Source: Octopus bimaculoides (taxonomy: Eukaryota). Taken from it: a stretch of 43,874 nt of DNA. The position numbers and the translations under genes are program-made. The DNA is taken from assembly GCF_001194135.2 (NCBI RefSeq), contig NC_068992.1:27415127-27459000 (forward strand), in the 5' to 3' direction. Position 1 is the first letter of the stretch, and each line of letters begins with the position of its first letter. Shown in pieces: positions 3,098-43,874 of the stretch. The notes beneath the pieces were generated by a model. It worked only from the letters and a program-made list of their open reading frames with translations. It had not been told where the DNA came from and searched no databases.

Positions 3098-3215
3098 CAA
3101 GAAGTTTGCTTCCCAACCACATGGCCCCAGATTCAATATTATCTTCTATAGCCTTGGGCTGACCAAAGCCTTTTGAGTGGATTTGGTCAACGGAAACTAA
3201 AAGAAGCCTGTCGTA
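3098..3215 (+). mobile_element. tRNA-derived SINE fragment, family A (AAGAAGTTTGCTTCCCAACCACATGG...GGAAACTAAAAGAAGCC)
   Basis: Matches the copies at about 24190, 35325, 35730 and 41745. Confidence 0.7.
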
Positions 3216-3756
3216 TATATATATATATATATATACACACACATATATATATATGGAAAGCGGACGTTAAACGATGATGATGATGATGATGTGTTTATGA
3301 AATTATGTCTTTGTGATTGTGCTTGTCCCTCACAACTGATTGACAACAGTTGTTGGTATATTTACATCCATGTAAATTAGCAGTTTGGTAAATGACACTG
3401 ATAGAATAAATACCAGGCTTTAAAATACAGTAAGTACAGTAGTTGATTCACTTGACTAAAAAGAATTCTTCAAGATGGGTGTCCCCTACCTCCCAAGCAT
3501 GACCACAATCTGATGACTGAAACAAGCAAAAGATTAAAAGGAGTGTGTGTATAGTGAGTCAGAGTAATTAGAGTGTAGTGTGTACTACTTCTAAGAAACA
3601 GAAAACTTAATGTTAGCTAAGTAAAAATTTGTTAGAACTGAAAAGTACACTGCCTCAGTGACAGGTGGTTTCAAACTTACCACAATAAATATCTATATTT
3701 CTTTTATATTCTATTCCAAGAGAACTTTAATCAAAATACTTTTGAAACCTACTTAC

Positions 3757-3851
3757 TTTAAGTGTGAATACTTCGTCATCAATTTTTCTCTTTTTTGGTG
3801 CTACTTTTGTTATGTCGTTTGTGATTAATAATGATCTCTGAGCAAACCCAT
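3757..3851 (-). CDS. TP63: Exon 10: [34 protein letters not shown] and start of oligomerisation domain
   Basis: Acceptor ctttgttatag|, donor AAA|GTAAGT, 95 nt, phase 1-0; PKKRK...FTL motif. Confidence 0.95.
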
Positions 3852-12800: not shown

Positions 12801-15800
12801 GGTATGAGGCTTAATTTTATTTCATGATTACTAAATTAAAAAAGCTAAAACTCAATTTAGACAAAAATTAATTCAAATAAGCTGTGAAACAATAGTATAA
12901 TTATCAATTGAGACAGATGACTGCAAAATGTAGGCAACGTGGTAGTAATTGTTTGTATGTAATTCTCAGTAGAAAACCATCAATTATAACAGTATAACAA
13001 CTAATAAATATTACAATGATCTCAGCAATTTCTATTTTTAACCTAAATAAAGCATGAAGAGAAACTGAGGGAAAAGGTTAAGAGCTTTGCTTTTCCTAAT
13101 GGCTAAAGGTGTGAAATAGACCATAGATTAACAGACCGGCAGCAACAATACATTCAAACATTGGCTAGTTGGTCACTAAACAGGATAGGATATAGGCCAA
13201 CAGAATAAATCTATAATTTAATATAGTAGCTATCCAACTACAAGTTCAGGTCATTGTCAGATAGGTGAAGACCTATACATAGGTAACTTTTATTTATTTT
13301 CACAAACAAATGCTATCAGATATCTTACAAAGAAAATCATGTCAATATAAATGTAAAAACTAATCACATGTTCAAGTAAAATAAAAAAAAACATTTTTTA
13401 TAAGCATTATTCTAATGTCTAAAGACATGTACATGTGTTACTGTATGGATATTTTTGTATGAACATAATACACACAAGTATTTATGTGTGAATATATTTT
13501 ATCAGATGTCAATCTTAGTGCACACACACATTTATCTATATAGATATATTTTATGGATGTATTTTGAGTGTATGGATGTGAAAGTGTGCATACACACACT
13601 TGTGTGTGAGTGTGTGAGAGGCAGACAATGACAGAAAATGTGTGTGTGTGTGTGTGTGTGTGTGTACACAATTCTGCACATCTGAAGGAACGCAATTGTC
13701 AAAAGGAAATGTTAACTTATGTACTAATGAATCCACATAAAAAATTACACAACATAAGCTGATTGTTATGCTGTCTCCTCATTAACAAAAAAGAAATATA
13801 CATGTATAAATACACACACATACAAAGTCATACACATATACAAGCAAAAATAGTGTTACATTAGCAAATCTGATAGAGTTGATAAACACACACACACACA
13901 CATATATCTACACACAACACTCACACATCCTTTTTGAGTATGCATACATGAAAGGCAAAGTATTTTGGTCTTTTTTTTTTTTTTTTTTGGTTGATGAAAA
14001 TAGCACACAGGTTTCTATAGTTGAATTACATCGAGTTTCTTTTTAGTCGTATGCCATAATTAAGCAAGAGTAATAATGTTTATTCATATATATGTATATG
14101 AAATATATTTTATTATTTCAAAACACACACTAAGGCAGGGTGAACAAGCAGCTAAAAGGAACAATATTAAGCATTATGCTATTGCTGCTGAACACTTCAT
14201 ATCAACCAGATTCAAGGAGACATTTATGTACACAAAAAAAAATGTCAATCAAACTGTTGGAGAGATTTCACTGGATATACCAGACTTTCATCTGTTATGT
14301 ACTCATGCACAATCAACTATGTAGGGAGTACTTAGAGCACTCACAGTCAATTAAGACATATGTGTTGTTATGCAGTATGTTCTTATTTAATTAAAGGCTC
14401 ACATAGCTACAGTGAAGACAGGTAAATGAAGTTAGGTCTGGACTCGATGGAATTCTGAATGGTTGGTAGCCCAGCAAAAAATTACCATTTTATGACTCAG
14501 ATAAAACAGGAAAGGCTGTAACCCTATTTTTTGCTGTACCTCTCAGACAAGCGAGCTTAACATAATTGATGTCCAAACTGAACTTCTGCACAGAGATATC
14601 TAACAGAAAAATATAATACAGTTCTATATTTAAGAGATGAGGAATTATGTACATTAATTACATTTAACGGATATTTATCCTCATCTTGTTTGTTGTTAAC
14701 ACAACGTTTCGGCAGATATACCCCCCAGCCTTCATCAGGTGTCTTGGGGAAATTTCGAACCAGGATTCTTATTCCTAAGGTATTTTTTTCGACGCTATTA
14801 TTATTATTCAAGTCACTATCTGGAATCAAACTTGGAATTTTGGGGTTAGTAGCCCGCGCTCTTAACCGCTACGCCATATGCCCGGGCATATGGCGTAGTG
14901 GTTAAGAGCGCAGGCTACTAACCAAGATTCCGAGTTCGATTCCAGACAGTGACCTGGAGATGGGGGGAGGGGGAGAGCAGCAGCAGCAGTAGCATTGAAA
15001 GAATACCTTAGGGATGAGAACCCAGGTTTGAAATTTCTCCAAGACACCTGATGAAGGTTGGAGTGTATATCAGCCCAAATGTTGTGTTAACAACAAACAA
15101 GATGAGGACAAATATCCATCAAATGTAAATAATGTAAAAGAAAAATATAAGCAAGAGAGGATTCCAGACAGCTGCAATACTAGAACAAATATTTAATGTG
15201 GATTGAGAAGTTAGCTAGGCTAATGGAAGTTGTATTTAGTAGATTTAGATGAAGAACAAGAACAAGGGAAAAAAAGAAGGCAAACACAGCACAGTAGTGT
15301 AGTAATGGCTGCATTATGTTTTTATGTTAGTTTACCAATCAGCTGGATTGTCATTCAGTCTAGAATGTTTGTACATGTAATAATATGCACCATACCAAAT
15401 ATGTTAGCAGCACTGCAATGTGAGTCACACTTCAGCTTTGGAAAAGAAGTCAGTATTATCCTGATATTGTGGCACTGAATGTTCAGCTTTCATTTATCTG
15501 TGTGCTTTGATTTACACAACTCTTCACCCATTTACACTAACACACATAGCAATCTATGCTGTTGATATAACAACCTCTCACAACCTATTTACAGAGCCAC
15601 TAATCAAGTCCAACAATATATCTAGGAGCTAGAGTCCAGAACTCAACAACTATAAGAGTGAAAGCAGAACCAAGCCAACCCAAACTATTACCCTGCTCCA
15701 CACGTATATACATACACGAGTGCACGTACACACACACACACATAGAAAAACTTAGTTTAGTAACATGTGTATGTCACAGTGGCACACATGTAATATATGT

Positions 15801-18800
15801 TACTAGTTACTGAATTCACTTGTAATTTGAGCAGATTTGAAATGAAAATTCTGTTACAGATTTAAGAAATGTTTGTAAGGTTTTATTCCATACCACATTA
15901 ACATGACTATGAAAAAGGCAAGTTAGATGTTTCATAAAACCCAGCTAAGTTCTTAATTATTTTTAGAATTTAATTGACATCTATCAATGATAAATTTCTG
16001 TTAGAAATATAGTAGAAAGGAGATAATGATAGGTGAAATAAGATATAGTAGAATTAATTATTCCTGCAGAGAAACACTGTTAAACACCTGTGATTGAGTT
16101 GAACTTACAAAGCATGAGGCAATAATTCATTAGCTGATCCACTCAGCCATTTCAACTCGTCAGAGGGCAACAGTGCAGATCACATTTTTAACTGATGAAC
16201 TTAGAAAAGTTATAAACATCATCATCATCGTCATCATTTAATGCCCGTTTTCCATGCTGGCATGGGTTGGAAGATTTGACTGGGGACTGGCAAGCCAGGT
16301 GGCTGCAACAGGCTTACAATACTTTAATCACTGAACTATAACAAAACAATAAAAACAACTTTAAACATCAACTGTAAACTATAGAAAAATGAGATGTGTT
16401 CCAAATAGTTTTATGCAAGTGTTAAGTTGATAAACTAATTTGACATGTGAAGTTCCATTGCTGATGAGGAAAATTTCACTGAGTATAAATAAGTTTCACA
16501 GGTTATAAAGTAAATTTCATTAGCAGTTTATTAGAAAGATGGGAATCCTGATATACAATACAGAAAACCTAATAGATTTCAGATAAGGAAGCATTCTCAG
16601 AAATGAAAAAGCCTAGCTGATTGATAAGTGAGGGTTATTTACAATACACATGAAGGGAGTTAAAAATACAAGAAAATAGACAGCAACCTGTTAGAAATTT
16701 AATATAGAGGTACCTATCCGCTAAAGTTAAATGGGAGCTTGCATGTACCAATGATCTAACATTCAGAATCCAATAAAACACAGCAGGAAATGTTTCAAAC
16801 TAGAAATAAAACAGTTTAAAATTTAAGACTAGGATCCACAGCAAGTTGAATGTAAGACCTAGATGCTTTGAAGAAGCAACTTAGTTCAGAAGGCAAGAAA
16901 TGATTTTGTTGATAATGCTAAAAATAGGTTTTTAAAAGATGCAATGTCTACTGAAATGACATGTACTAGGCAGAACACTGAAAAATTAGGTGAACATATA
17001 GAAAACTACTTTGTAACTTAGTGATTTAGATGACTCAATGAAAATAGCACGTCTGACACTGTAATTGGGNNNNNNNNNNTGCTGGCAAGGGCTGGAATGG
17101 TCTTCTTATTGGAACCCTTTGTCATAACCTTCAAGAGGTTCAACCCCTGAGACCAGCCTTCACTATTTCTTCCCATCTCTTTCTCTGCCACAGGCTCCTT
17201 CCATTTGTATTACTTGGTCCTCAGTTAAATCATGTTCTGTCATTTGTGAACATATCCAGTGTACCAACTTTACACATTCCCCAATCAACACACCTGGTAC
17301 AGCATAATAAAATCTGTCCATTGTTTGCAGAGAATATCTATTTATTGCTAACAATATTTATTCTGAACTTTTTCCACTCTATTCTTACTCTGGCTGCAAT
17401 GTTTTCAAAACACTCTAATCCTCCATTTCTATTTAGGTCAAGTACACAACAGAAGCTATTTAGGTCAAGTACACAACAGAAGCTGCCAATTACCCCAGAG
17501 AAGCCCTCTGACCCTTTGAAATAATATATTTTATGGGTATGAAATCTTATCCTGTCAGCTTTCCAATGATCCCACTGCATCTCATATACACTCATAATTT
17601 ACACATTCAGTACACTGTACAGAATTCCAGACAACTTCTTTCCTGCATATAGAATATGGCCATTTCTCAGGTAGCAACAATAGAGCCCTGTCTTCTATAC
17701 CACTAAAACTTTTGTCACTGTAAAATATAGTTTAAGACCATGTGATTCTAGCATTTGTTTCCACATTTGGTATTTCTTCTCGAGATCCTCAATAAATTAA
17801 TTAAGGAATTGAGTATTGTTTGTTTAAAATTGCAACATTAAACTATGAGAAAGTTTGAGTTCAAGACAAGAAGGTAGCAGAACATCAGAGGTATTGGTGT
17901 AAACAGAATAAATAATTACATTATATAATTAAGCAAATGAGGTAACCTACAAACATTAAATACCTACAAGAAATAGCAGTCAAATTTCTATCAAATCACA
18001 ATCAACCATCTTAAATAAGAAGAGATACATTGGAGAATGTGGCCACTGATGTGTAAAAGGATGGGAAGAGTGTGGCTCTGATTATTGATCTTTTTGATTG
18101 GGGCTGACTTCAGAGATCAACATCAACATTAGTATGTAAATATAATGCAAATGAAGAATATGTACAAAGCAAGTTTGTAGTGGAAGGAGACAGTAATAAG
18201 AGACAAAGAAGGAAAATCTAAATTGGAGCAGTTACTCGAAGATAGGAAAACATGAGACATTATGTTGTTGTTGTTGTTGGCACTCCATCGCTTACGATGA
18301 CGAGGGTTCCAGTTGATCCTATCAACGGAACAGCCTGCTCGTGAAATTAATGTGCAAGTGGCTGAGCACTTCACAGACACGTGTACCCTTAACGTAGTTC
18401 TCGGAGATATTCAGCGTGACACAGGTGTGACAAGGCTGACCCTTTGAGTTACAGGCACAACAGAAACAGGAAGTAAGAGTGAGAGAAAGTTGTGGTGAAG
18501 AAGTACAGCAGGGTTCGCCACCATCCCCTGCCGGAGCCTCGTGGAGCTTTAGATGTTTTCACTCAATAAACACTCACAACACCCGGTCTGGGAATTCGAA
18601 ACCGCGAGTCCGCTGCCCTAACCACTGGGCCATTGCGCCTCCACGAGACATTATGTAGATCACTTGAAATAAGATTTAGTGGCGTTGAAAGGTATTATCT
18701 ATATGATAGATATATCAACATGGAATAAAAAGACCTAGGATCCCTTAAAAACAATACTTTATCATCATCATCATCATCATCATCATTTAACATCTGCTGT

Positions 18801-20655
18801 CCATGCTGGCATAGGCTGGACGGTTTGATCAGGGCTAGTAAGCTGATGAGCTGCATCAGATTTCAGTCTGATTTAGCATGGTTCTATGGCTGGATGCCCT
18901 TCCTAATGCCAACCACTCCAAGAATGTAATGGGTGCTGTTACATGCCACCAGCATGGGTGCTAGTTGCTTGACACCAGTAACTGGCATAAATTATATATA
19001 AATACACACAATTAAGTATTGAGACAGAGTTTATGAATAAATTTTCATTTGCACATGTGTATTCAGCCTTGCAATGCAATTAAACTCCAGAACTAAACAA
19101 CAATTGGCAAATAGTATGGTAGAGCTAGTATTTACCTGAAAGTAAATATGTGAATAAGCACTTTTCCTTGTGATATTCTCTTTTAGTGTCAGGATAGAGT
19201 TATGCTTTTATTTTGGGGGATTCTATTGGGAATGTTTTATTCCCAATATTATTCCTTGTCTTTAGAATAATTTGTTATCTGAGTATCCTGGTGAAACCTT
19301 TTGCTTTCCTGTGTTGCTTGAATATAGTTTATAACCATATAAGAAGTTTTCTTGCTATTTGCCTTGCCAATTTCTATTTCAGTTTAGAAGTTAGATTGAT
19401 ATTGACGATAATCATGCATTGAATCTCTTGAACTAATTTAGGTAATGCACATACCAACTACCAATTTTTGTGGCTTTATTAGTTGTATTAAACAACAAAC
19501 AAATCGATTACATTTTCCAGCTACACAAAATGAGATCTGCCAGTAAATATTTAAAAAATTCAAACCCATAACTTACTTAGATGGAACTGTTGGTTTTGGA
19601 GATTGGATGCTGTCATGAGGATAGGGTGTGGATGAAACAGGCTGAAATGAAGTATTTTAGAAGAATTAAAAAATATTATACAATGATAAGTAGAGAACAA
19701 TATCTTTTTTCTTTAAACACTAAATAATTATTTCCTAATTTGATTTCGAATGACCATCATTATTAATTGCTACTGAGCTTCTATTTATGGCCTAATCAGA
19801 AAAGGAACAAAATGTCACCCACCATGCTTTGCAGCAACAGTGGGTTACTTTGCAGAAGAATTTCTACATTTAAAATTCTACTTTGCTAGGCAACTTTGAT
19901 GATCTTCCATAGATACTAATGATGGAATGTATCTAGCTTCTTGGCCATCTTTGCCTATATTCTTCCTGTCTCATTGCTATACAGAACTGTTAGCAGGAGC
20001 AGTGCACTATATAACCAAAGTTTTATGTTAATTCTGATGCATGTTATTCCCCAGTTTTGGCACTTACAATAGAATATAGACTCAACTTTGCCAATACTGC
20101 TGTTTACATCACTTTCTATACCTCCACAAGTGATCATACTGACCAAGTACAAGAAATTGTTCACAACTTCCGCAACAAGCTATCATAGCAGAGTTTTCCC
20201 CCAAGTCATTCTAGACCCTTCTATAATGTGGCTTAAGCTCAAACATCTAAAGGAAAAAGAAAGAGGAGCAAGATATAGAGAGATGCATGTGAAAAATAAA
20301 AGCCAAAAAGAAGACATCTCATGGCAATTAAAAATGCAGTCGTCAGGATTTAATGATATCAATCATTGTAACTGATTATCATTATAACTTAGTTTCTCAG
20401 ATATGTGTATTTAAACAACTAGAATTTTTAAACAATTTCATTTTGCATAAACATGCAAACTATGGAAGAAGAACTTTCAGTGTAACAGTTCATATATTAG
20501 AAAAGTGAAAATACTTACTACTTCATCATAATTACAGGTATTTCCAAGAACACTTGGCTGACAGTCATTTAAACCTAGCTGATTGTGTGACTGACCCATT
20601 ATGGGATTTAACTGAAAAATAGGGAGAGAAAATATATGTCAGTATCAGCAGCAGC

Positions 20656-20695
<40 letters not shown>

Positions 20696-23600
20696 TAAAT
20701 ATTAGCAGTAATCTATAGAGTCATGGGAAATTGAAAACAAGATGTCACAGTTACAATTATAGGCTCAGTTAGATAACAGGTTACTACCATTATACACGGC
20801 TTGTCAGTGATTTTATTGGTATAGTGTATTGGCAGTCACAAACAGCCAGCTTTGGCATTTAAGTAGTCAATACTCCAATATTTCATTGTATATCAGTCAT
20901 TTAACTAATAAAGCCACCTGTAAATATATAATTTACACATTACACACATATATTTGCTTTTACCTTAGACACAAAAAAGGAAAATTGAAGTTGAAACCAC
21001 CAGTTTTTGAACTTAGAATCCTTCTAAGAGAACTAAATATTTGGTCTCATTGCAGTATTTCTACCAAATCTGAGATAACAGTTTCTTATATTCACAGTGC
21101 AGACAGAATATATTGCAAGTTAACTTAACCCGTGTACATTGCTAATATTTATCTTAAACTCAAAGACTTTAAAACATAGAGACATTGCACTAACAGTATA
21201 AGCCAGGTTTTCTTCTATGTCATAGTATTATCACCTCAAGGTCTAGTTTTCGACAAAAACTAACATTTGTTAATTCTAATTTGTCAAAAAAATAGCAATC
21301 CTTTATTACATTAACTTGTATAGTAAAATCCATAATAATTTCTACTTTATAATGCCTAAGGTAAGAAGAGTATAATTCATAACTCATGTCAGAAAGGTGA
21401 TGGGGTGTGGAGAGCAGGAGCGAATGAATTTATAGTAATCACTATGAAACTTAAATGGTTGAAAGTGACTTTATTGCAGTAACATAAGCTAAAGGAAGAG
21501 AAGGAAGGTTCATACTATAGCCGTCTTTGAAAAGAAAGACTAAATAATTAATGATGTTATACTTTACAAGTAGCAACAAACATACTAGGTGTAACAACAA
21601 GGTCTTACAAAAGAGTAAATTTCCTTGTAACAACTATCTGGTTTGAGTGTTGAAACATGAAAATATACTGCAATAGAGTTTAAAAAAAGGTGTCTCAATA
21701 GTTGGCCAGTGGCTGGAGAGTATTATTGAATGAAACAGTTACCTACTGCAAAAAAGCCACACACACACACACAACCTGCCACCTTGTTTTTTTTTTTCCA
21801 AAGTTTAGAAGTGTATGACTGACACTTTTCCAAAGGTGCTTTTTAAGCAAATATAGAAACAATTTTCAGCTAAAAGATTGTGAATTTGTATTTTACTCAA
21901 ATCATCACACAATGTCCTTCAATCAAGTTGTGTCTTCCAATAGCTTCGAAGTCAGTCATATTGTCTAGTTGGCCTATATAGTCTTCTTGGAGAAGTGGCT
22001 GCAACACATTGTGTCCTCTTCCGGTTACCCTAGAATCATCCTGACAACTAAAGATTACCTCCAACTACATTTACATTTTTAAGACCTGCAGACTTAATAG
22101 ATGCAGCCAATGAGCCACCTAACTGGTCCTGTGCCAGTGGCATGCAAAAACCACCATTCAAGTGTGGTCAATGCCAGTGCTGCCTGACTGGACTCCGTGC
22201 CAGTGGCACATAACAATCACCCACTACACTCTCGGGGTGGTTGGCGTTAGGAAGGGTATCCAGCTGTAGAAACCTTGCCAGATCAGATTGGAGCTTGTGC
22301 AGCCGCTTGGCTTGCCAGTCAAACTGTCCAAAGAATGCCAGCATGGAAAGCAAATGTTAATGCCAGCATGGAAAGCAGACGTGAAACAATGATGATGATG
22401 CTGATGAATGCAATAACAAGTCCAATGGCTAGCAGATCTCATGCATTTAATTGCCTATTTGCATACCACCTGCCTGTTCAATTTGTGTCAATTACAACTT
22501 CTTGAGAACAGTCAATTCTACAGAATATTTTACCCAAACATTTCAGCATTCGAAAACCAGTTAAGCACTATATCTGCTTAATTTCATTGTAAACCACAAA
22601 AATCAATAGTTTATTGTAAAAATTATCCCTATACACACAAAAGTGTAGTTGAACTGAAGAACAACCAAAGTGGAATAAATTCTTATCCTTGAAATAATTA
22701 ACAAATACTCTAAACATTCTGAAATGAAATATTCTGCCAGATTAAACCAGGTGTCTTCTCACTCAGATATCTTGGGCTAGCAACCTTTTATAATCATTCT
22801 AACTAGTCACTCTCAATGAACTAGATAAATAATTATCATTAACCATTATATTTGTAAATAAATTCCAAAATCAGACAACCTAATGGAAAACATCTGGTAG
22901 AAAAGCCTGGTAAAAATTATCAAAGCAAAATAAGAAACTTTTCTCTTAAACACATTGTATTTAATCTACAAATGCTACTAAAAATAAACCCTAACTTCTA
23001 GTTTTTACTACTTTTTTTAACATAGCTTATCTTATATAGAGAGAGAAATGAAAGGGTTACTGATTCATTCTACACAGCTATTCCTTGTTTCTTCTGGTTT
23101 ACCATTATCTAACGCTAAACCATTCACCTTTTTAGTAGTACAACAAAGAGAACTTGTGGCAAGATGTGATACTATACTAAACATATTGGTATTTCTATTT
23201 CAACATAAATAGTTCATCATTTCCAACATTTTAATCATCAGTTCATGAGATGAGCCCAAAAATGAATCATCAATGCAAGCCGGTGCAAGATCATAGTAAA
23301 TTTAGTTTCTATTTCTGGAATACACTTTCATGAAATCCAGTAGACAATACAATATCAAAATGAGCTTCAAAAGTAGACAAAGGTGAATTTAGTAACAGAA
23401 ATCATAACAAAGCAGTTAAACTGTGAAGACATTATTGCCAACTTAATTTTTAATTGAATGGTCCCTAGTTGTAAATAATGTCTAAAACCAGAAGCAGATT
23501 TGTTTAAAAACTGTAATGAAAGAAAAACAAAAAATGAAACCGGTGGATTCTATCTTTGAAGTTCTGACTATTAAAGAAATGAAATAGCTTATCTTAAAAC

Positions 23601-26600: not shown

Positions 26601-27121
26601 CTACTTACCGGATAAGTTGTAAACCCCCTTCTTTCAACCTTGATCATTATAAATATATATACACACACACATATATATATGCAACAGATAAAATAGTTCC
26701 AGAATAAAACCCTACAAAATTAACTAGATTAAGAAGTTAAAATTCCAATTCTAGTGTTGTGGAGAAAAACATCTTAATAAATATAGTATATATTATAATG
26801 ACTAACAGTATGAAGAACAAGTTGTATCATGTTAAATAGCCACAAATAAAAAGAATATGCCTGAACTTGTTAGCTGGTCACTACGAATATGTTGGCTATA
26901 GCTACTAATGAGAGAAAAACAATACAAATGACAAAGTGAAATGTAAGAGAAAGTGACAAAATAAAGTTGACTGGCAGGACTTCATTCTTGGACAAACCAA
27001 AATATCAATAACAAATCAAGGCAATGAAAGAATCAACTCATAGAAAAGGTTATAAATTTACAAACAAAATAATTGACAGCGGTGACCTCTTTCATATCCA
27101 ACTTCAAATACTTAAATAATA

Positions 27122-27161
<40 letters not shown>

Positions 27162-27784
27162 CATATATACATAACCCATGCTAGCATGGAAAGCAGACGA
27201 TGATGATGATGATATATATATATATANNNNNNNNNNNNNNNNNNNNNNNNNNNNNNNNNNNNNNNNNNNNNNNNNNNNNNNNNNNNNNNNNNNNNNNNNN
27301 NNNNNNNNNNNNNNNNNNNNNNNNNNNNNNNNNNNNNNNNNNNNNNNNNNNNNNNNNNNNNNNNNNNNNNNNNNNNNNNNNNNNNNNNNNNNNNNNNNNN
27401 NNNNNNNNNNNNNNNNNNNNNNNNNNNNNNNNNNNNNNNNNNNNNNNNNNNNNNNNNNNNNNNNNNNNNNNNNNNNNNNNNNNNNNNNNNNNNNNNNNNN
27501 NNNNNNNNNNNNNNNNNNNNNNNNNNNNNNNNNNNNNNNNNNNNNNNNNNNNNNNNNNNNNNNNNNNNNNNNNNNNNNNNNNNNNNNNNNNNNNNNNNNN
27601 NNNNNNNNNNNNNNNNNNNNNNNNNNNNNNNNNNNNNNNNNNNNNNNNNNNNNNNNNNNNNNNNNNNNNNNNNNNNNNNNNNNNNNNNNNNNNNNNNNNN
27701 NNNNNNNNNNNNNNNNNNNNNNNNNNNNNNNNNNNNNNNNNNNNNNNNNNNNNNNNNNNNNNNNNNNNNNNNNNNNNNNNNNNN

Positions 27785-33800: not shown

Positions 33801-36800
33801 TTAGGTTTGGTGTCATACAAGTGAGCTTTTAATGACGTGCATAAGCTAAGCTAAGTTATATAGATAATAGGCAAATGGCTCCTTCAAAAGATAAAAGTCT
33901 CATTTCCAATGATGCTAATATTCCAACAATAGAAAAGATTTTGTCTTGTTAGAAAAGAGACAGTAGACGATGTTGTAAATGATAAGCATTCATAGTGATT
34001 TGCTATCTTTGGATTACGAATAAAAGACACATTAAAAGGAAATATTGAAAAGTGAAAGAAAGAGAATTTCTTTTCATCATTTGCCTTTAGTAAAATCATT
34101 ATTTTTACCTATGCTAAATAAATATCAGCACAATGTACTGGAGTTTCTGTAGAATTATAGAAGTAGCCAGATACCAAAGGACATAATCACTTAAGTACAA
34201 AACAAAACGAAATGGTTACCGTAAGAAAAAAGATGTACATACACACACGCACAGTGAATGAATGCCAAGAGAAATCTAAGAAAATATCTTGGCAAAATAA
34301 TTTTGAGCAAACTTATTGAATAAGATTTTATATGACTAACATAGAAGATGAGAAATCAGATCTATTATTCAACATGAAACAAAGATTCATATTTCCCAAG
34401 AGAAAATAGTAGGTCTATAAGTATATAAACAATTTTCACTGATATAACAAGATAATTCATGTTATTTAAAAGATATAAATTTAGTGTAGACAAGTTGTTT
34501 ATGTCAACAATGACAAGAGCAAAAACAAAAGATTTTACATATATTTTATCCAAAATAAAACAAAAATTTTAGTCTTAATATTAATCATTCTGAAAGTAGA
34601 GAAAAATGTAAAGACAGTAAAACAGAATGATTTACTGTTTCCAATTCTTTTTGTCTTTTTTTCCTGAAATTGTATATGGAGTTCAGTTTTTAACCTTGCA
34701 AAATGAATCTTAATTTGTAAAGAGGTTCAAAAAAGTGGTGGTTGATTTCATGGCAAAAAGCAGGAAAAAAACATCTTTCAAATAAGTTATTGTCAAAGCG
34801 TCACTGAGTCTTGTCCCTATTTACAAACAGGTCAAGGAAGGACATGTTAGACCATGTAGTCAGAGATAACTTAAAAGACGATGGTCAGAGCTGAAATGCC
34901 TCTAATCATAAGATTGTTAAGTCATTGTTGATACAGAGCTAAACAAAAACAAGTAGGTGAACAAAATAAGTGTCCTGCATAAAAACACAATGAAGGGCTT
35001 ACAGCAGATTTGATCTCACAAACTACAAGTTTGAAAGCAATACTTGACACATCCCTTTCCTCTCAACTAGAAAGATCTTTGTTTCACTCAGGAGAATGCA
35101 GCCATGCTGAGACACCACCTTGAAGAATTTTTAGTTGAACAAATCAACCCCAGTATTTTCCATTTTTTTAAGCTTGGTACTTATTCTACCAGTTACTTTC
35201 GCCAAACCACTAAATTATGGGAATGTAAACACACCAACATCGGTTGTCAAGTAGTGATGCTAACACATATCATCATCATTCTCCATGTTGGCATGAGTTG
35301 GACACACGCGCACACACGATGAACTGCTTTCAGTTTCTGTCTACCACATCTACCCACAAGGCTTTGATTAGTCCAAGGCTATCATAGAAGACACTTGCCC
35401 AAGATGCCAAGTAGTAGGACTGAACCCAGAACCATATGGTTAGGAAGCAAACTTCTTACCACACAGCCACACCTGCAACTATGTATTGAGATTTAATATT
35501 GTACATTTTTGATGAACAGTGACCTGAAAGTAATTGTGAAGGAATAAGTTTTGCCATTTTACATGGCTTACTCAGAGGAATAGAAGGGCTCCATTTATGT
35601 GCCATTTTGGTATCCTGTGACTGGTGGAAGGATAGAATTTGGTTATCCTCAAACCAGAAAACTGACCTAAATATTTGCAACAGAGTAAACTATTAAAAGA
35701 ACAAAAACAATTCCTCTAACAAGCTTCTACACAGTTTCCATCAACCAAATTTCACACACAAGGCCTTGGTTGAACCAAGACATAATTAAAAGACACCTGC
35801 CCAAGGTACCACGCAATGACATTGAACTCCTAACGACATAGTTAAAAAGCAGAGTTCTAAACTCCACAACAATGCCAGGTTTAACATTCTTCTAAGTTAC
35901 ATAAATTTACTCTGTTAACATAAACAAACTATGTGGAACTCAAGAATGAAAAATAAAATGTCTAGAATTTAAGAACAAGGACAAACACCAAGGAATAAAG
36001 CAATAATTTTAAGTATGATTTGAAGAAGTAAAGGAATTTCATAAAATGAGAATTTTTTTTTTAAATGTATATAGGTGACTAGTTTTTTATGAGTAACCTA
36101 GTATACTCTTAATGTTTCTTGTATAAGGCAGCTCTCAGTGAAGAATTAACATCAGTCTAGTAACTACAAAACAATATTCTTACTTCTCAAAAGAGGGAGA
36201 TCTATAGATCATTTAATATTTATACTAATACAGAAATTTAAAAAGAGGATTTCTAACATAAGCCAGAAGTTATCTAAGGGTTACAGCTTGAATTATTGGG
36301 TCATTTGAAAAGGCAGGCAAACTGTTTCCCAGGTAACTTGATCAATATATGAACAAATTATATTTGTAATGGTACAACACATTAAAGGCAAATATGGAAA
36401 GACTGAACAGCAACACTATTTGTTGTTACAAAATAAGAGCAGGTTAAGAGTTGGAAGCAAAAGCTCTGAGGCAAACATGTTTATAAACAATAAGCACAAA
36501 ATTTTAGATAGCATTCCTTGATCAATATTGAGTAAGGAATGAAAAGTTTTATTTGGCAATCTGGTGTTGTCTTAATTAAATTAAAAGTTACAACTCTAGG
36601 ATTAGACTTAACCCAGCCAAAATGTAACTACAAGGATGGTGGTAAAAATCTATAAAAGTTGAAGAATATATATCATCATCATAATTTAACATCCGTTTTC
36701 CATGCTGGCTTGGCTGTGTATATATGTGTATGTATGTATGTATGTATGTATATATATAAATATATATNNNNNNNNNNNTATATATATATATAGGTAATAT

Positions 36801-37627: not shown

Positions 37628-40600
37628 CATACACACAGACACACACACACATTTCACTAACCCACATAAAAATACATCTAAAAGTTTGTCATTATCCAAA
37701 TGAACTTACCAACTGAGCTAAGCTTGATGATCCTGTGACAAGCTAGAAGAATGATAAAAGAAAGTTCAACTTAGAATTACATAAATTAAACAACTAAAAC
37801 AACAGCTAATTGACCTTTCAGAAGACTGATTCAGTATAATTATACTAATTAATTCACAACATACCATTGATAAGCCTTTCCTTCAAGTCAATTAGAACTC
37901 ATATACATATATAAAGCTACAAACGTCTTATAAACAATATCAAGGAAAATAAAATTGTTTTATATTTTTGTTAATATATGAAAAACACTAACATTCTAGG
38001 TTGGTGAAATATATACCAAACCGACATTTATATTTGACTAAATGGTGGGTAACAAACAAAAACAGGTAATAAAATAATTGTTCAAACAAATTACATCATC
38101 TTCAGAGAGTAAAAAAATATTTTAAAACATTCTTTACAATATTTGGCCAGGTGGTTGTTTGTCTATTGTATTTAACTCTTCACCTACTACCCCTTTATTA
38201 CTCTCCCAATTATCAATTGCCTTCTTTCCTATTCACTGTACCATGACCCCAATATAACAAAGAATGGCACCAAACATGTCTATATTAATTCCCACGCAAC
38301 CATCACCTTTCATCACTCTACCACTGACCATGTCACAAGATGGCTTACTATCATCTCTCTCTCTCTCCTTTAATGATACCTACCACACTCTTCTACTATT
38401 ACTCATTTTACTGCGAACATTAAATGATTATGATGATGATTTACGTTACTAATTCATGTTTATTTTACAGATGTACAAGAGTAGAAAATGGGTAGAGAAG
38501 ACAGTCAATTATGTCATCCCCAATACTCAATTGGTTCTTACTTTATCAAACCCAGAAGGATGAAAGGTGAAGTCAACCACAGCAGGAATTTGAACTAAGA
38601 ATGTAAAGGGCATAACTAACCACCACAAAGCTTTGTGTCTGATATGCTAATGATTTTGTTAATCCAATGCTTCAAGGTATCAAGATCTTATAATCACATT
38701 TCTTCTACTTTCCAGATGAAAGGATTGTAGCTATATAAGGAATCTGTATTAGAAATGACATCCAGCTGTTCCATTTTAGAATAAAAAAAAGAAATTCTTA
38801 CCAAATCTGTTAAGCTATCATTCCTCACAGGATATTCATCATTTGAGCCAATCCTGAATGATTGAATTTCAAGAGAAGTTTGTTCAGGCTCATTTTCCCT
38901 AAATTCGTATGCAATTCCTCTTTCATGAATTTGTGCATATTCACTAAAAATGAAAAAAAAATATGGCATTAATAATTTTTTTTTTTAATCCATTTCAAGT
39001 GAACCCAGTCTTTTTTATAGGGGTCAAAGTCAACTTGTAAAAATGTAAAAAAAAATCTTACCTAAATATTATCTTTGCATTTCCCATTCAATTAGCAAAC
39101 TTTACATTGACAATTTTTTAGGAAAGGTAATTTTGAACAAGAGACTGCCTTGTGCCAGAACACTTTTCTCAATTTATTGGAAAACAAAAGCTAACCAATT
39201 CATATAATGCTGGGAGAGGGCTCTCATATGACACACAGACAGAGAGATATATCTGGAACAGTGATGGACCTAATTTAAGATGGCTACTGAATACAAATTT
39301 TTACGTACATCACATCTATAGAATGTGATGTACGTGATCACATCATAAGTGAAGGTACAGGAACCAAAGGTTGAGGTAAGGATCTGGATCTCTGGAACCA
39401 TTTTCTTTCAACTTGCCAGTGCTGGTGCCATGTAAAAAGCACCCAGTCCACTCTCTAAAGTGGTTGATGTTAGGAAGGGAATCTACCCATAAAATCCATG
39501 CCAAATCAGATCTCACCAATGATGGGGTCATATAAAAAGCACTCAGTCCACTCTGTGAAATGGCTGGTGCTAGAAAGGGCACCCAACTATGAACATCATA
39601 CCAAAGTAGACAGAGGAGCTTGGCCAAGTCCTCTAGCTCGTCAGCTCGCATGGAAGAGATGATGATAAATGGTCAAAATCCTTATGATTTTTCTTTCCTA
39701 ATCATCCACATATAAAACTAATAGGAAAAATGTGGATACAAGAGTGATATTCTTATTTGTGTTGGGGTTTTAAAGTCAATTTGAAGCATTAAAAATTTGT
39801 CCAACACAATGGTGAACACAGCAGAATTATATGGATGCAAACTCTATTTCACCTTCTCATGAATAAACAGAGCGGAGTGGGGACCAAAATCTTCTCCTGA
39901 TATATCAGTGTAGGTTGATTGGGAGAATGGAGACTATTGCTAATGCATTCAATTTTTCTGTGGAATGTATTCTGAAAGGCAGAGGAGAGGGTGGTATAAA
40001 AAGGTAAAATTTTTGAAGGAAAAAATTCTCTGGAGCTTCACTTGTTATTTCTAGCATGTCAAGCAAGCTGTTGAAACAGCAGATGAAATGAGGCTGCCCT
40101 TACTTCATCTGCTGGTTCAAGAGGCATCCATGCACACATGGTAAGTATTGTTATACCAACAACCTGGTATGGGACCAGTTTGAAAAACTGAAATTTTGAG
40201 AAGAAATTTTTTTCAGAACTCTGGCATGTCACATGACCATATTGAGACCTTCCTCATTTTATCTGCTGTTAAAAGCAGCAGTTATGCATACAGAAATGAG
40301 TGGCTGAGTTTAAAACTAGAATGTTAATATGTCAGTTGAGATGGTTATTCCAAACAGCTGAGAGCTTAAGTGATGGATTTTGAAAAAATTGAAATTCTTT
40401 AAATATTTTTTTTTTCCTGAATTATTTACTTTTCCACATGAAATTTTCCAAATTTTTTTAAAGACTAAAGAAAAAAAATTTTGGAGTTGTGTGAAATTTT
40501 GAGAGCGTAAAATCATTTATCACCATTATCAAAAACACAATTCCAAAGAAATTTTTAAAAAAGAAAAAAGAGGGAGGAATGTATTCAACAGATCTACACT

Positions 40601-43394
40601 GAATTTCTTCATCTTTTCAATTGTTTATACTTACTTATTACCAATACAGACCATCACTACTTTATTTGGATCCTACTGTGCATGTATATGTGTATACATT
40701 TAAATAGCCTTAACTATGTTGTGTGCCCAGCCTCCAATTTGACCACTTTTTGCTCCATAAGTTTTCTCCTTTCTACAACACAATCTTTGAGGCAGTTTTC
40801 ATTATTAGATTCCTCACTCAGATATTTCAGTAAAGCTTAACTATAAGGTATCAGTGTTACTCCCTCTCCAATTTGACTACAATTTTGATGTGGCTTACAG
40901 AATTAGATTCTTCTCATTGAGATCTTTTACTGAAGTGCAACTAAAACAAAAATAACAGAAATAAGGAAACTATACTACTTCCGAAGTTGCACCAGTGTTA
41001 CACAATTTTTGAATACACATTTATTGCAACTTTTTTTTCCTCGAACCAATTTTCTATTACAATATTTCAAAATGTAGAGGAGTTCGAGTCTTTTCAGTAA
41101 ACTGACCTGCATTTAATTTGGTCAAGAACTGAATTAGTTAAATGGCATAGGCCATGAATGCTATTCACCCACTGCCATTGGTGAATGATAAAACCAAGCT
41201 ATTGACATCTTTGAATCTGTACTAGCAACACCTAACAGGATTTGTATGATGATTTTGACAGCTTGGTGTAGAGTATGAGGACAGAATGGGCAGTCTTTTG
41301 GCATTCTGGAATCATAAAAGGGTTAAAAACCTCAGATTTAGAAGTATCTCTACAGAGGTAGTAAAATGTGCTGGAGTTAATCACATAATTACACAGCTGA
41401 GATATCTCCACAGACAAGAACAATTTATTACAGATTTTGTAGTATGGGCTATTTTAAATGTATACTGCAAGAATGAATGAAGCAGTAAAATATACAATGG
41501 TCCCATTACTTAGAGTAGTAAACATCATCATTTCTACATCTATGTTGACACGAGTTGGATGAAACTGTTCTACAGCAAATCTTTACTTCCTCAAAGTATT
41601 TTATTCCCCATCATCACATGTCAAACTGCTGAGTTACCAGGCTTCTATATTTAGGCAAGACATAAAGAATGTCATTACTGCCCATGTCGTGTCAATGCAA
41701 GAACATGTAGGGATATGCACACATATGCATATACACACGACTGGTTTTCTTACCAAATTTTATCAACAAGGCATTATTCAACCCAAAGTTATAGCAGAAA
41801 ACATTTGCCCTAGGTGTCTCAGAGAAGAATCAGATCTAAAAGTATGTAATTGAAAAGCAAACTTCTGAACCACAAAGTTATCCCCTGTGCCATTGAGTAT
41901 ATTTACAAATAAATTGACTTAATTGATATCCAGCAATAGAAACTATATCAAAAATGCTATGTATATGTGAAATGTGATCCTTGACCCATTTAAGAAGGTA
42001 GAAATTCCAAGATCGGACTTGGGCCATAACAACCTCTTCAACCAATGGAAAAGTAGATGTAAAATGATGAATGGAAATAAGTAGCTTTGTTAGAGATAAA
42101 GCAAAACATCAAATGACATTACAAGCAGGGATGTTGGAATCAGAGTCTTGAAACAATTACTGGGTTGCTTGTTGTCTACATAAAAATGTAGACTCCAACA
42201 AAATACAAATAGTAATATAAAGCATTAAATTTCTTATTTCACAAATACTAATTTGATTATTTTCTGTACTGGAAATCATCAAACTAGATTTAAGGGATTC
42301 TATGAAAGAGGGTCTGGTAGAAGCAATTCTGTTTCTGAGAATAAGATACTAGTAAATTACAGATTTTTTTTTTCTGTAATAAAATTTTTAGAGATAAGCT
42401 TTGTAATCTTTTAAAACATAAATTTTATTTACTTTAATGTAATCTTTTATTCATTTAAGTTATATATTCAAACTAACCACAAAAAGCATGGTTATGTACC
42501 AAAGTTTCTTTCTTTTCAAATGTTCATTGTTTTAGTTTTAACTTTGATGCATTTTAGAATCTCACCTGGTAAACAAAGATGCTTTAGAAGTATCTCTACA
42601 GAGGTAATGATAGATGCTTCTGATAAGACCCTATAGAGAAGAATTCTACCCTCATGACCATTCCAGGTAAAGCAAGCAGAGAAGATGGTGGATGGAAACA
42701 AAGATGTCCTTGATATTTTTTTATGGAATACTTATAGTTTATTCCTTTTATAGTCTTATTTTAAATCTAAGTTTTGTGTTATACTCACTTATTTAACATC
42801 AAAAGAAAATAAATTGGTATAGCTCTATCCCATTTTAGCATGCCTCCAGGTTAGAGTGCTAAAAAGTATTTTGATGAGTCGTATTAGTTAGCCAATATAG
42901 GTTACATGCATTTAATAACTATAAGAAATATATATGTCTAATAACAAATAGAGGAGCCAGAGATGAAACTGAAGGTTTGTGCATGAAACAAGCTTCACCA
43001 AAGGCAGGACATCCCAAACAACACACACCTAAGTCTAATACACTAAACATTAGACCTGAAAATCAAGTGCTAAGAGATTAAATCTAACTTTACTAGCTTC
43101 GATTCAGTGGAGAATGGGGACTAATACTTTTAGAGCAGTTAACAAAAATAGAGATCCAAGAATAAATAACACAAATATTCACATGCAAAGATATTACAAT
43201 CAATCTAATCAGAAATAACAAAAAGATATGAATGCATTAAAATCATTAAATCTACAAATATGCTAATAGACATCAAATATAATTTGAAGAACTTAAATTT
43301 TAACTTACTTCTGTGAAATATGTTCCAGATTATTCCAAATAGTATCAAATTCCTGCGAAGCCCTCTGATTAGATGACATTCCTTGAGAGGCCAT
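3757..43394 (-). CDS. TP63: p53/p63/p73-family transcription factor, TA isoform, 3'-partial: join(43394-43309, 38943-38802, 20611-20519, 19641-19577, 11432-11354, 8921-8735, 6445-6335, 6031-5926, 5458-5340 or 5331, 3851-3757)
   Basis: Ten exons with canonical AG/GT ends whose phases (2,0,0,2,0,1,1,2,1,0) join into one stop-free frame. It contains the FxxIWxxL TA motif, the full p53 DNA-binding domain ([33 protein letters not shown]) and the PKKRK NLS. Closely resembles squid p53/p63 as I recall it. The symbol is approximate because invertebrates usually have one p53/p63/p73 gene. Confidence 0.96.
4758..5048. mobile_element. piggyBac-type MITE
   Basis: TTAA on both sides (4754-4757, 5049-5052); TIR CCCATTACCT / AGGTAATGGG. 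Confidence 0.75.
5331..5458 (-). CDS. TP63: Exon 9: [39 protein letters not shown](SKK), end of DNA-binding domain; two in-frame donors (exon ends at 5340 or 5331)
   Basis: Acceptor tttacttttcag|; p53 box V motif [12 protein letters not shown]; donors A|GTAAGA and G|GTAATT are 9 nt apart, both phase 1. Confidence 0.95.
5926..6031 (-). CDS. TP63: Exon 8: [35 protein letters not shown]3 loop with Zn ligands and R248 equivalent
   Basis: Acceptor catcctatcctag|, donor GA|GTAAGT, 106 nt, phase 1-2. Confidence 0.97.
6335..6445 (-). CDS. TP63: Exon 7: [36 protein letters not shown]
   Basis: Acceptor attatgacag|, donor AAG|GTAACT, 111 nt, phase 1-1. Confidence 0.96.
6669..6964 (+). repeat. ~295-bp direct repeat, copy 1 (copy 2 at 9708-10001)
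   Basis: About 98% identical by eye (4 substitutions, one 2-nt indel). Confidence 0.95.
7003..7234. mobile_element. Degenerate piggyBac-type MITE
   Basis: TTAA-CCCTTTTGTTACC ... GGTATCAAAAAGG-TTAA; related to the copy at 32052. Confidence 0.65.
7249..8542 (+). mobile_element. Full-length decayed Tc1/mariner-superfamily transposon, DD37D (maT) type, transposase pseudogene
   Basis: TA TSD both sides; 25-bp TIR CAGGGTGTTCAAGCTAAATTTGACA / TGTCAAATTTAGCCTGAACACCCTG; ORF pieces 7399-7695 and 7845-8111 followed by *QQD-x37-N(D)Y. Confidence 0.9.
8735..8921 (-). CDS. TP63: Exon 6: [21 protein letters not shown]...[17 protein letters not shown], Zn ligands equivalent to C176/H179
   Basis: Overlaps ORF 8703-8900; acceptor ctctctcacag|, donor A|GTAAGC, 187 nt, phase 0-1. 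Confidence 0.97.
9708..10001 (+). repeat. ~295-bp direct repeat, copy 2
   Basis: Near-identical to 6669-6964. Confidence 0.95.
10745..10983. repeat. 239-bp near-perfect palindrome (119-bp arms, 2 mismatches)
   Basis: ATAACCAAGTTTCAGGAACTCATCGATG...CATCGATGAGTTCTTGAAACTTGGTTAT, centred on 10864. Confidence 0.95.
11354..11432 (-). CDS. TP63: Exon 5: [26 protein letters not shown], start of DNA-binding domain (L1 loop)
   Basis: Acceptor aaatttcag|, donor ACA|GTAAGT, 79 nt; YPG...KSTTWT is the p53 box II equivalent. Confidence 0.96.
11817..12190 (-). mobile_element. RTE-type 3' tail fragment with internal tandem sub-repeats
   Basis: Reverse complement of the family at 1-186; GGTGCTTTTTACATGC-like unit repeated. 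Confidence 0.7.
14650..15136. mobile_element. Head-to-head inverted pair of tRNA-headed retroposons with Penelope-like tails
   Basis: Centre GCCATATGCCC|GGGCATATGGC (14883/14884); each arm has A box TGGCGTAGTGG and a B-box-like sequence, then CCTGATGAAGG...AACGTTGTGTTAACAACAAACAAGATGAGGA. Confidence 0.75.
16216..16315 (-). mobile_element. RTE-type 3' tail fragment
   Basis: CATCATCATCATCGTCATCATTTAATGCCCGTTTTCCATGCTGGCATGGGTTGG. Confidence 0.65.
16600..17620. mobile_element. Highly decayed RTE LINE remnants: RT core on + before the gap at ~17070, post-RT region on - after it
   Basis: [11 protein letters not shown] resembles ELLYADDL; the minus-strand piece [10 protein letters not shown]...EGACGRER resembles LRWYGHV...GRGRP. 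Confidence 0.45.
17429..17482. repeat. 27-bp tandem duplication
   Basis: CTATTTAGGTCAAGTACACAACAGAAG x2. Confidence 0.95.
18266..18644 (-). mobile_element. Full-length tRNA-derived SINE with (CAA)n tail and 12-bp TSD
   Basis: Head GTGGAGGCGCAATGGCCCAGTGGTTAGGGCAGCGGACTCGCGGTTTCGAATTCCC; TSD GAGACATTATGT at 18254-18265 and 18645-18656. Confidence 0.9.
18759..18988 (-). mobile_element. RTE-type 3' tail fragment with (CAT)n
   Basis: Same family as 1-186, opposite orientation. Confidence 0.7.
19577..19641 (-). CDS. TP63: Exon 4: [21 protein letters not shown](N), proline-rich linker
   Basis: Acceptor cttcatttcag|, donor AA|GTAAGT, 65 nt, phase 0-2; completes the conserved VPSNTxYPG with the next exon. 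Confidence 0.93.
19930..20240 (-). mobile_element. Decayed RTE LINE RT fragment
   Basis: ORF 19955-20164: [22 protein letters not shown]...[20 protein letters not shown] resembles FxYLGS...DINxRIGK...KLRLYxxxVxSVLLYGSET. Confidence 0.7.
20519..20611 (-). CDS. TP63: Common exon 3: [31 protein letters not shown]
   Basis: Acceptor ccctatttttcag|, donor GTA|GTAAGT, 93 nt, phase 0-0; begins LNPI like the squid protein (recalled). Confidence 0.88.
22125..22400 (+). mobile_element. RTE-type 3' tail fragment with duplicated terminal AATGCCAGCATGGAAAGCA
   Basis: Same family as 1-186. Confidence 0.7.
24190..24345 (-). mobile_element. tRNA-derived SINE, family A
   Basis: On minus: TGTGTGGTTAAGATGTTTGCTTCCCAACCA...GGGTTCAGTCCCACTGCGTGGTACCTTGGGCAAGTGTC. 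Confidence 0.75.
26609..26647 (-). CDS. TP63: Alternative first exon of a DeltaN isoform: [13 protein letters not shown]
   Basis: ATG with A at -3 and an in-frame upstream TAA (26720-26722); 13 codons; strong phase-0 donor CCG|GTAAGT compatible with the exon at 20611; near match to the mussel DeltaNp63 N-terminus MIKFERTGFTTYR (recalled). Confidence 0.85.
26815..26872. promoter_or_regulatory. Putative p53/p63 response-element cluster upstream of the DeltaN exon
   Basis: Two zero-spacer pairs of RRRCWWGYYY-like decamers: GAACAAGTTG+TATCATGTTA (26815-26834) and GAATATGCCT+GAACTTGTTA (26853-26872). Confidence 0.45.
27120..27830. repeat. (TA)n microsatellites and RTE tail remnant around a ~557-N gap
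   Basis: Visible directly. Confidence 0.9.
28135..28208. repeat. 32-bp tandem repeat, 2.3 copies
   Basis: CCAAACAGAGAACAATCCAACCTTTATTTTAC repeated exactly. Confidence 0.95.
28881..29631 (-). mobile_element. 5'-truncated, 5'-inverted RTE LINE insertion with 11-bp TSD
   Basis: RT core ([10 protein letters not shown]) on + at ~29460-29625; downstream region (SFMCLG...DVKANIGK ... TPR...) on - at ~29455-28890; TCATTGAAATT at 28870-28880 and 29632-29642. Confidence 0.75.
29913..30120 (+). mobile_element. tRNA-derived SINE with Nin/Deu-like central domain
   Basis: GGCGAGCTGGCAGAATC...GAGTTCAAATTC, then GACTTTGCCTTTCATCCTTTTGGGGGTCGATAAAATAAGTAC; possible TSD TATTACA(T/A)CAC. Confidence 0.8.
32052..32256. 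mobile_element. piggyBac-type MITE
   Basis: TTAA TSD; perfect 12-bp TIR CCCTTTCGTTAC / GTAACGAAAGGG. Confidence 0.85.
32261..32472 (-). mobile_element. Nin/Deu-like SINE, degenerate
   Basis: Reverse complement of the 29913 family. Confidence 0.7.
35104..35475 (-). mobile_element. Adjacent SINE fragments: Nin/Deu-like (about 35104-35265) and family A (about 35325-35475)
   Basis: Family motifs shared with other copies in the window. Confidence 0.65.
35730..35880 (-). mobile_element. Degenerate tRNA-derived SINE, family A
   Basis: GACACCTGCCCAAGGTACCACGC motif. Confidence 0.55.
38505..38675 (-). mobile_element. Degenerate Nin/Deu-like SINE
   Basis: CCCAGAAGGATGAAAGGTGAAGTCAACC...GGAATTTGAACT. 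Confidence 0.6.
38802..38943 (-). CDS. TP63: TA coding exon 2: [47 protein letters not shown]
   Basis: Inside ORF 38694-38969; acceptor ttcatttttag|, donor TTG|GTAAGA; 142 nt = 1 + 47 codons; resembles squid EYTQIHERGVGYE...QTSLEI (recalled). Confidence 0.92.
39405..39666 (+). mobile_element. RTE-type 3' tail fragment with internal duplication
   Basis: AAAAAGCACCCAGTCCACTCTC unit occurs twice; ends GCATGGAAGAGATGATGAT. Confidence 0.6.
41745..41880 (-). mobile_element. Degenerate tRNA-derived SINE, family A
   Basis: AAAACATTTGCCCTAGGTG...AAAAGCAAACTTCTGAACCACA. Confidence 0.5.
43309..43394 (-). CDS. TP63: TA coding exon 1: [28 protein letters not shown](N), transactivation/MDM2-binding helix
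   Basis: ATG at 43394; SQ motif and F-x-x-I-W-x-x-L; donor AA|GTAAGT (phase 2) matches the next exon; upstream acceptor ttataatag| with the exon starting at 43428 implies an earlier exon outside the window. Confidence 0.9.
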
Positions 43395-43874
43395 TTTTGA
43401 CTCAGATGGTATCACCACCTTACCAAACCTATTATAAAAAAAATACATTTTTAAATTGTTTCCATCAAATTAAATCGAAATAATGAAAAATATTTTAATT
43501 TGATTAAATTTTTGTGAAACAAACATCTTTTTTTCTGAAATGTCTTTAAAATATATAAGTTTGAATGCTAATTTTTGATTTTTTTTTTTTTTTACCTACT
43601 AACTCCATTACTTTATGAAATACAACTCATTATTTCTAAGCATAAATGCATATGTAAAATAACCAATTTTTTCAATTCTTATTTCACGCTCCTCAGCCAT
43701 ATTTTGTTTTAAAAATGAAAATTTAAAAGTTTTTTGATGAATAAAACTAAATTAAAATTCTATTTTCATGTTGATGCTTTTTCTAAATTTAATGAAAGAA
43801 TGGAGGTTCAACTTAATTTTGTTTTGACCAACTTGTGCAATATATTTTTCAAAGTAACTTATACAGCAATAACA

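Follow-up and report, generated by a model that had tools for sequence, protein, structure and literature searches.

The p53/p63/p73-Type Gene

The window analyzed here, which is the whole stretch of 43,874 nucleotides from Octopus bimaculoides, carries a p53/p63/p73-type gene on the minus strand, as revealed by six-frame motif searches and by tblastn with mollusc and annelid p53-family proteins. Eleven coding exons, designated A to K in the direction of transcription and all located on the minus strand, were mapped between positions 2814 and 43394, with canonical AG/GT boundaries throughout and GTAAGT donors in six of the eleven. The coding part of exon A (43309-43394) contains the ATG and the transactivation (TA) motif and ends in a phase 2 donor. 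The motif, EFDTIWNNL, was recognized by inspection as an instance of F-x-x-x-W-x-x-L, and no Pfam TAD match was obtained on the spliced product at E<=0.01. The acceptor observed for exon A at 43428/43427 places the TA promoter, along with one or more 5' non-coding exons, outside the window. Exon B (38802-38943, EYAQIHERG...SLTDL) is the last exon of the TA region; its donor is in phase 0 and it forms the upstream boundary of an intron of 18.2 kb. On the other side of this intron lies exon C (20519-20611, ...NYDEV), which has a phase 0 acceptor and an internal Met (LNPIMGQ) and to which a DeltaN first exon would be joined.

Exon D (19577-19641) is followed by the exons of the DNA-binding domain, which starts in exon E (11354-11432, ...TWT) and continues through exons F (8735-8921, ...RCPNH...HNE), G (6335-6445), H (5926-6031, GSEWV...GGPNRRP), and I (5340-5458). 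Exon J (3757-3851) encodes a linker, a KKRK resembling a nuclear-localisation signal, and the beginning of the tetramerisation motif, the remainder of which (VRGRDNYEVLSKIRDAMELAA...) is found in exon K (2814-2920). The gene extends past the window beyond exon K, and the part coding the SAM domain lies past that end.

The spliced product matched Pfam PF00870 (P53, 6.9e-64) and PF07710 (P53_tetramer, 6e-15), and its best structural relatives were an Alvinella p53-family domain (1.3e-99) and human p63 (about 1e-68). In addition, the DNA-contact motifs (including NRRP) are identical to those of human p63, and together with the Pfam domains they make a protein that recognises p53-type elements a fair expectation. 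A protein search with the DNA-binding domain returned matches in other molluscs and annelids only, with identities of at most 85%, and a 1209-residue concatenate of the frames around the sites described below and exons B and C had no match. Neither a cephalopod protein nor a cephalopod transcript turned up in the collections searched. In the literature, nothing specific was found on octopus or cephalopod p53 isoforms.

A mollusc protein (P0003) with an apparent alternative N-terminus at exon B was considered and rejected. The underlying transcript (L001, positions 1-100, Logan SRR28036163) retains intron sequence (ttgtctttcag/AGAGTAT), and the start of the called protein (MFQLSFR...) is this retained sequence before the exon B equivalent; the transcript therefore says nothing about DeltaN isoforms. 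The frame of L001 is also split in two, with the DNA-binding part separated from the tetramer/SAM part by a frameshift or an assembly error.

Paired p53-Type 20-mers and a 13-Codon Frame between Exons B and C

The intron between exons B and C (38801-20612, 18.2 kb), the positional counterpart of the P2 intron of vertebrates, holds two p53-type 20-mers and a short open reading frame, the latter situated 12.2 kb downstream of exon B and 6.0 kb upstream of exon C. A response element was defined as two RRRCWWGYYY decamers with a spacer of 0-13 bp and few mismatches. The first 20-mer (site 1, 26815-26834, GAACAAGTTG+TATCATGTTA on the plus strand, spacer of 0) has two intact CWWG cores, CAAG and CATG, and departs from the consensus at 1+3 = 4 flank positions, matching it at 16 of the 20. 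The second (site 2, 26853-26872, GAATATGCCT+GAACTTGTTA on the plus strand) matches at 18 of 20 positions, with one mismatch in each half-site; one of these changes the core C4 to T, and the cores read TATG and CTTG. The gap between the two sites is 18 bp and the pair spans 58 bp. In the orientation of the gene, which is on the minus strand, both 20-mers are situated 168-225 bp upstream of an ATG at 26647-26645.

The first-pass annotation had proposed that these half-sites form a feedback element just upstream of a DeltaN exon, and its description of the DNA is largely borne out: site 1 at 26815-26834 with intact cores and zero spacer, site 2 at 26853-26872 with one mismatch per half-site (one of them in the core C), a distance of 170-230 bp to the DeltaN ATG, and a CCAAT at about 26745 are all present, the four flank mismatches of site 1 (1+3) having been left unmentioned. 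The CCAAT pentamer lies at 26745-26749 on the plus strand (ATTGG in gene orientation), ~100 bp upstream of the ATG at 26647. CCAAT/ATTGG occurs 92 times in the window, or once per 464 bp, and the pentamer was therefore rejected as support and carries no weight.

The candidate DeltaN mini-ORF (26609-26647, minus strand) comprises the ATG and 12 further codons, 13 in total, and ends in phase 0. It is directly followed by a consensus splice-donor hexamer, GTAAGT (26603-26608, minus strand, in the context ccg/gtaagtag), the intronic part of which is identical to the real donor of exon J. Since this donor and the acceptor of exon C are both in phase 0, a join between them would be in frame. A (TA)n(TG)n microsatellite (26648-26690) abuts the candidate ATG on its upstream side, and the TATA-like strings ahead of the ATG belong to this microsatellite. 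The 13 residues of the candidate peptide do not permit homology testing, and they are unlike the exon 3' peptide of vertebrates given in PMC2194062. Sequence collections searched for exact matches to the ATG-26647 frame gave none. If transcription began downstream of this ATG, the Met inside exon C could serve as a TA-less start, so that the 13-codon frame would not be required by a DeltaN model and is weaker as evidence. A possible acceptor (ttaattttgtag/G) was also observed 66 bp upstream of the ATG, which would turn the segment 26713-26609 (minus strand) into a cassette exon phase-compatible with the donor of exon A; the product of such an exon would be microsatellite-derived, and the cassette reading is therefore considered unlikely.

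Comparison with Chance Expectation

When mismatches were counted, the window contained a single 20-mer with no more than two mismatches (site 2 alone), compared with a mean of 1.22 in dinucleotide shuffles, and at least one full site of this quality occurred in 71% of the shuffles. Perfect half-sites were, if anything, rarer than expected (6 in the window vs 11.1 in shuffles). Clusters of at least three half-sites within 58 bp, each with at most one mismatch, showed the same tendency, with one in the window, a shuffle mean of 2.0, and at least one such cluster in 87% of the shuffles. By mismatch counting there is thus no excess of p53-type sites over chance, all these counts being at or below shuffle expectation; the first-pass annotation had itself noted that degenerate matches are common in AT-rich DNA.

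The mini-exon is likewise at chance level. The intron contains five sense GTAAGT hexamers, only one of which has an in-frame ATG (that at 26647); an in-frame ATG before a stop is found at 23% of arbitrary positions, giving 5 x 0.23 = 1.16 expected vs one seen. With the looser donor GTRAG, five phase-0 mini-exon candidates are found in the intron. Throughout the window, GTAAGT occurs 18 times in sense (six being real donors) and seven times in antisense.

By the strict definition the intron has a single mini-exon candidate, and the paired 20-mers lie less than 230 bp upstream of it; the share of the window within 300 bp upstream of such a mini-frame ranges from 0.03 (strict definition) to 0.26 (loosest definition). 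The joint probability of the pair and its co-localisation with the mini-exon is well below 0.05, a nominal value obtained with criteria fixed post hoc: motif spacing, distance, and donor definition were all chosen after the data had been seen.

Predicted Affinity of the Two Sites

A more quantitative view was obtained with the measured affinity matrices of Brandt 2009 (Additional file 5, PMC2807882), which cover five proteins and replaced an approximate matrix of our own. With the Dmp53 (fly) matrix, the predicted dlogKd was 0.98 for site 1 and 1.71 for site 2. The corresponding values were 2.10 and 1.48 with the human p53 matrix, 2.11 and 1.81 with DNp63 beta, 2.10 and 1.96 with DNp63 gamma, and 2.94 and 2.32 with DNp73 beta. 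Site 1 is the best single site of the window under Dmp53, the only invertebrate matrix, where 0.23 such sites are expected per shuffle; site 2 ranks between second and eighth among about 42,700 positions, and both sites are within the best nine of these positions under every matrix.

In absolute terms, the predicted affinities are low. The Kd of both sites would be micromolar by the p63, p73, and human p53 matrices, and the predicted affinity falls about 60- to 900-fold (1.8-2.9 log units) below the optimum with the p63 and p73 matrices, the drop being ~100-fold for p63 and 200- to 900-fold for p73. The genome scans in PMC2807882 used dlogKd cut-offs of 0.5-1.5. Two of the values are <=1.5, those of site 1 under Dmp53 (0.98) and, narrowly, of site 2 under human p53 (1.48). 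With the matrices of p63 and p73, the nearest relatives of this DNA-binding domain, the values are 1.81-2.94 and neither site would be callable. According to PMC2807882, p63, p73, and fly p53 owe 50-70% of their specificity to positions 4 and 7.

The arrangement of the two sites is more unusual than their strength. Among adjacent pairs (20-60 bp apart), site 1 and site 2 form the best pair in the 43.9-kb window. A pair as good was found in 1.0-4.5% of locally shuffled windows (p 0.010-0.045, within 60 bp), and the shuffle p rose to 0.03-0.11 when 120 bp was allowed. Real DNA is lumpier than shuffles, and the test was therefore calibrated with column-scrambled motifs on the real sequence, 5-8% of which reached p<=0.02 and 10-12% p<=0.05. 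The calibrated significance of the pair is therefore only about 0.05-0.1. The matrix scan against a background of matched composition, which the first-pass annotation had put forward as a check, gave a divided answer: the pair ranks first under all five matrices, and its calibrated p is only about 0.05-0.1. Clustering of the pair above chance is suggestive at this level and not established. Taken together, the observation is partly confirmed, in that the sequences are present and their excess over chance depends on the test used.

Equal or better single sites are found elsewhere in the gene. The 20-mer at 7852-7871 (GAACTTGTCAGGACCAGTTG), which lies in the intron between exons F and G, within the part coding the DNA-binding domain, is the best single predicted site of the window for human p53, both p63 forms, and p73 (dlogKd 1.2-2.0), and it outscores both site 1 and site 2 under four of the five measured matrices. 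At 34830-34859, in the intron that also holds the paired sites and 8 kb upstream of them, three half-site-like decamers follow one another (GGTCAAGGAA GGACATGTTA GACCATGTAG), with two CATG cores among them; the 20-mer at 34840-34859 had the top score under the approximate matrix of our own, and no exon-like feature was seen downstream of 34830-34859.

Interpretation of the Paired Sites

Both features, the 20-mers and the mini-ORF, are most likely chance products of AT-rich sequence, an explanation that we prefer with moderate confidence. The 20-mers would then be degenerate RRRCWWGYYY matches and the mini-ORF a decoy donor that happens to have an in-frame ATG; together they would form no working internal promoter or feedback element, an absence of function that we infer. 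This explanation draws on the lack of excess in mismatch counts, the low predicted affinity, the calibrated p of about 0.05-0.1, and the occurrence of the mini-exon at expectation. It is also favored by the loss in site 2 of C4, a position that weighs heavily in the specificity of p63, p73, and fly p53, and by the microsatellite abutting the ATG and the equal or better single sites at 7852 and 34840. Several points count nominally against chance, namely that the pair is the best under all five matrices, that site 1 is top under Dmp53, that the sole strict mini-exon is close by, and that the intron is P2-like.

The alternative nearest to the first-pass annotation is a P2-type promoter in the post-TA intron, whose first exon would end at 26609 and be spliced to 20611 and through which the TA protein would induce its DeltaN antagonist. 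We regard such a promoter as possible but unlikely. The same small probability is given to a TA-less product that would start at the 13-codon frame or, if transcription begins downstream, at the Met of exon C, and it seems no less doubtful that the TA protein would bind the two weak 20-mers cooperatively and thereby close a negative feedback as in TP73/TP63. Several properties of the locus are in line with this model: a TA motif (FDTIWNNL) is encoded, together with DNA-contact motifs equal to those of human p63; fly and man share the binding specificity of the p53 family (PMC2807882); no other adjacent pair in the window scores as well as the two 20-mers under any of the five matrices (shuffle p 0.01-0.045); the consensus GTAAGT donor is in phase 0 and fits exon C; and the position and 13-residue size of the frame parallel exon 3' of human TP73 (PMC2194062). 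However, the predicted affinity is about 60- to 900-fold under the optimum with the p63/p73 matrices, calibration leaves the pair at a p of about 0.05-0.1, chance alone predicts a mini-exon of this kind, the TATA-like strings are microsatellite, and every test criterion was picked after the observation. For the proposed induction of the DeltaN antagonist by the TA protein, the anatomy fits and the statistics are weak.

It is less probable still that the 20-mers are real but weak binding sites belonging to an intronic enhancer or an autoregulatory element of this or a neighbouring gene, with the 13-codon frame as a decoy. Such an element would agree with the pair-clustering statistics, which are independent of the mini-exon, itself at chance level; on the other hand, the predicted affinity is low, the significance is borderline, and better single sites exist under some matrices at 7852-7871 and 34840-34859. 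Chance remains the preferred explanation. As it stands, the locus combines weak motifs with a short frame in an AT-rich intron, a coincidence that is statistically borderline and whose value is mainly that of a hypothesis.

Repeats and Sequence Surroundings

The segment 26690-27118 is AT-rich, has microsatellites on both sides, and lacks a second copy in the 43.9-kb window. The upstream limit of this single-copy segment is a (TG)n(TA)n microsatellite with a short dispersed repeat (CCCATGCTAGCATGGAAAGCAGACG + (ATG)n) at 27119-27226, which extends up to a 558-N assembly gap (27227-27784) whose near edge is 355 bp upstream of site 2. That the segment 26690-27118 is a degraded copy of a mobile element or repeat in which the p53-like words are incidental is improbable: the window is rich in SINE-like and microsatellite-associated short repeats and the segment is flanked by microsatellites (26648-26690 and 27119-27226), but no second copy of it is present in the 43.9 kb.

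Rfam and tRNA scans of the window were empty. An exact 20-mer scan of metagenome contigs retrieved one contig (L002), which was rejected as a chance match, as expected for a 20-mer, since its flanks are unrelated.

Several repeat families were observed in the introns. Copies of a SINE-like dispersed family of about 100-250 bp, with 76-88% identity, are scattered in both orientations (6-185, 11817-12006, 16217-16314, 18764-18965, 22118-22360, and 39416-39511). A short repeat (...ACCCATGCTAGCATGGAAAGCAGACG followed by (ATG)n) is joined to (TA)n/(TG)n microsatellites at 27131-27219, 36666-36767, and 3214-3298, with weaker ACCCATGCTAGCATGGAAAGCAGACG-type copies near 132-192, 16211-16268, 18770-18815, and 22360-22400. 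Two different introns share a 296-bp direct repeat of 98% identity (9708-10001 and 6669-6964), which is far younger than the other repeats. In addition, palindromic stretches of 240-920 bp with 75-98% identity were detected at 1510-2370, 10745-10983, and 14650-15136, the first of which is a microsatellite-like TG/TA-rich block. Seven N gaps are present (2563, 2696, 10988, 17070, 27227, 36768, and 37125); the flanks of all but that at 17070 were inspected, and most of the gaps adjoin such microsatellites, suggesting that the assembly breaks there.

Comparison with Known Systems

The closest parallel is the P2 promoter of human and mouse TP73; the human exon 3' encodes 13 residues and lies in the intron after the TA exons (PMC2194062). 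In PMC2194062, induction of this promoter by TAp73 through a responsive element is attributed to two reports (Grob 2001 and Nakagawa 2002), one of which also describes induction by p53; the vertebrate DeltaNp73 loop that the first-pass annotation took as established for p53 and TAp73 alike is accordingly supported for TAp73, and for p53 by one of the two reports cited there. The same paper places a TATA box 25 nt upstream of the TP73 start site, gives experimental support for the exon, the start, the induction, and the dominant-negative action, and states that exon 3' is conserved between mouse and man. The octopus locus would resemble this arrangement in having a candidate start site within the intron that follows the TA-coding exons, a short first exon whose frame continues into the next shared exon (13 residues in man and 13 codons in the octopus candidate), and p53-type sites a few hundred bp or less upstream. 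The differences are that the octopus exon and start site are candidates predicted from sequence, that the candidate peptide is unlike the vertebrate one, and that a strength well below the optimum is predicted for the octopus sites.

The DeltaN promoter of TP63 and the intron-4 promoter of TP53 (giving Delta133p53 and, in zebrafish, Delta113p53) are also p53-family responsive. Both follow the logic that the octopus candidate would share, in which the full-length protein activates an internal promoter and so induces an antagonist that lacks the N-terminal part. In TP53, the start lies inside the region coding the DNA-binding domain, whereas the octopus candidate precedes the domain, as in TP63 and TP73. 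Judging from the sequence, it is rather unlikely that the octopus gene carries a P2-type promoter switched on by its own TA product via paired low-affinity elements. If it did, the TA-to-DeltaN loop seen in TP73, TP63, and TP53 would predate the protostome/deuterostome split or have arisen twice, and the locus would be the first sign of a self-limiting TA-to-DeltaN circuit in a mollusc, at the corresponding intron. Such a circuit would bear on the age of isoform-based control in the p53 family and offer a simple, testable element in a non-model animal; being another case of an already known circuit type, it would be of moderate evolutionary interest.

The P2 promoter of MDM2 contains two adjacent, validated p53 response elements. 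The octopus pair likewise comprises two 20-bp elements with a short spacer (18 bp), placed upstream of what would be an internal first exon for a negative regulator. The two cases involve different genes and different modes of inhibition, and the MDM2 elements are of higher quality. Finally, the octopus sites resemble background RRRCWWGYYY matches in that mismatch frequencies equal or fall below those of shuffles and similar or better single sites are scattered in the window, but they differ from such background in that two top-ranked sites are adjacent, which is unusual at a calibrated level of about 5-10%.
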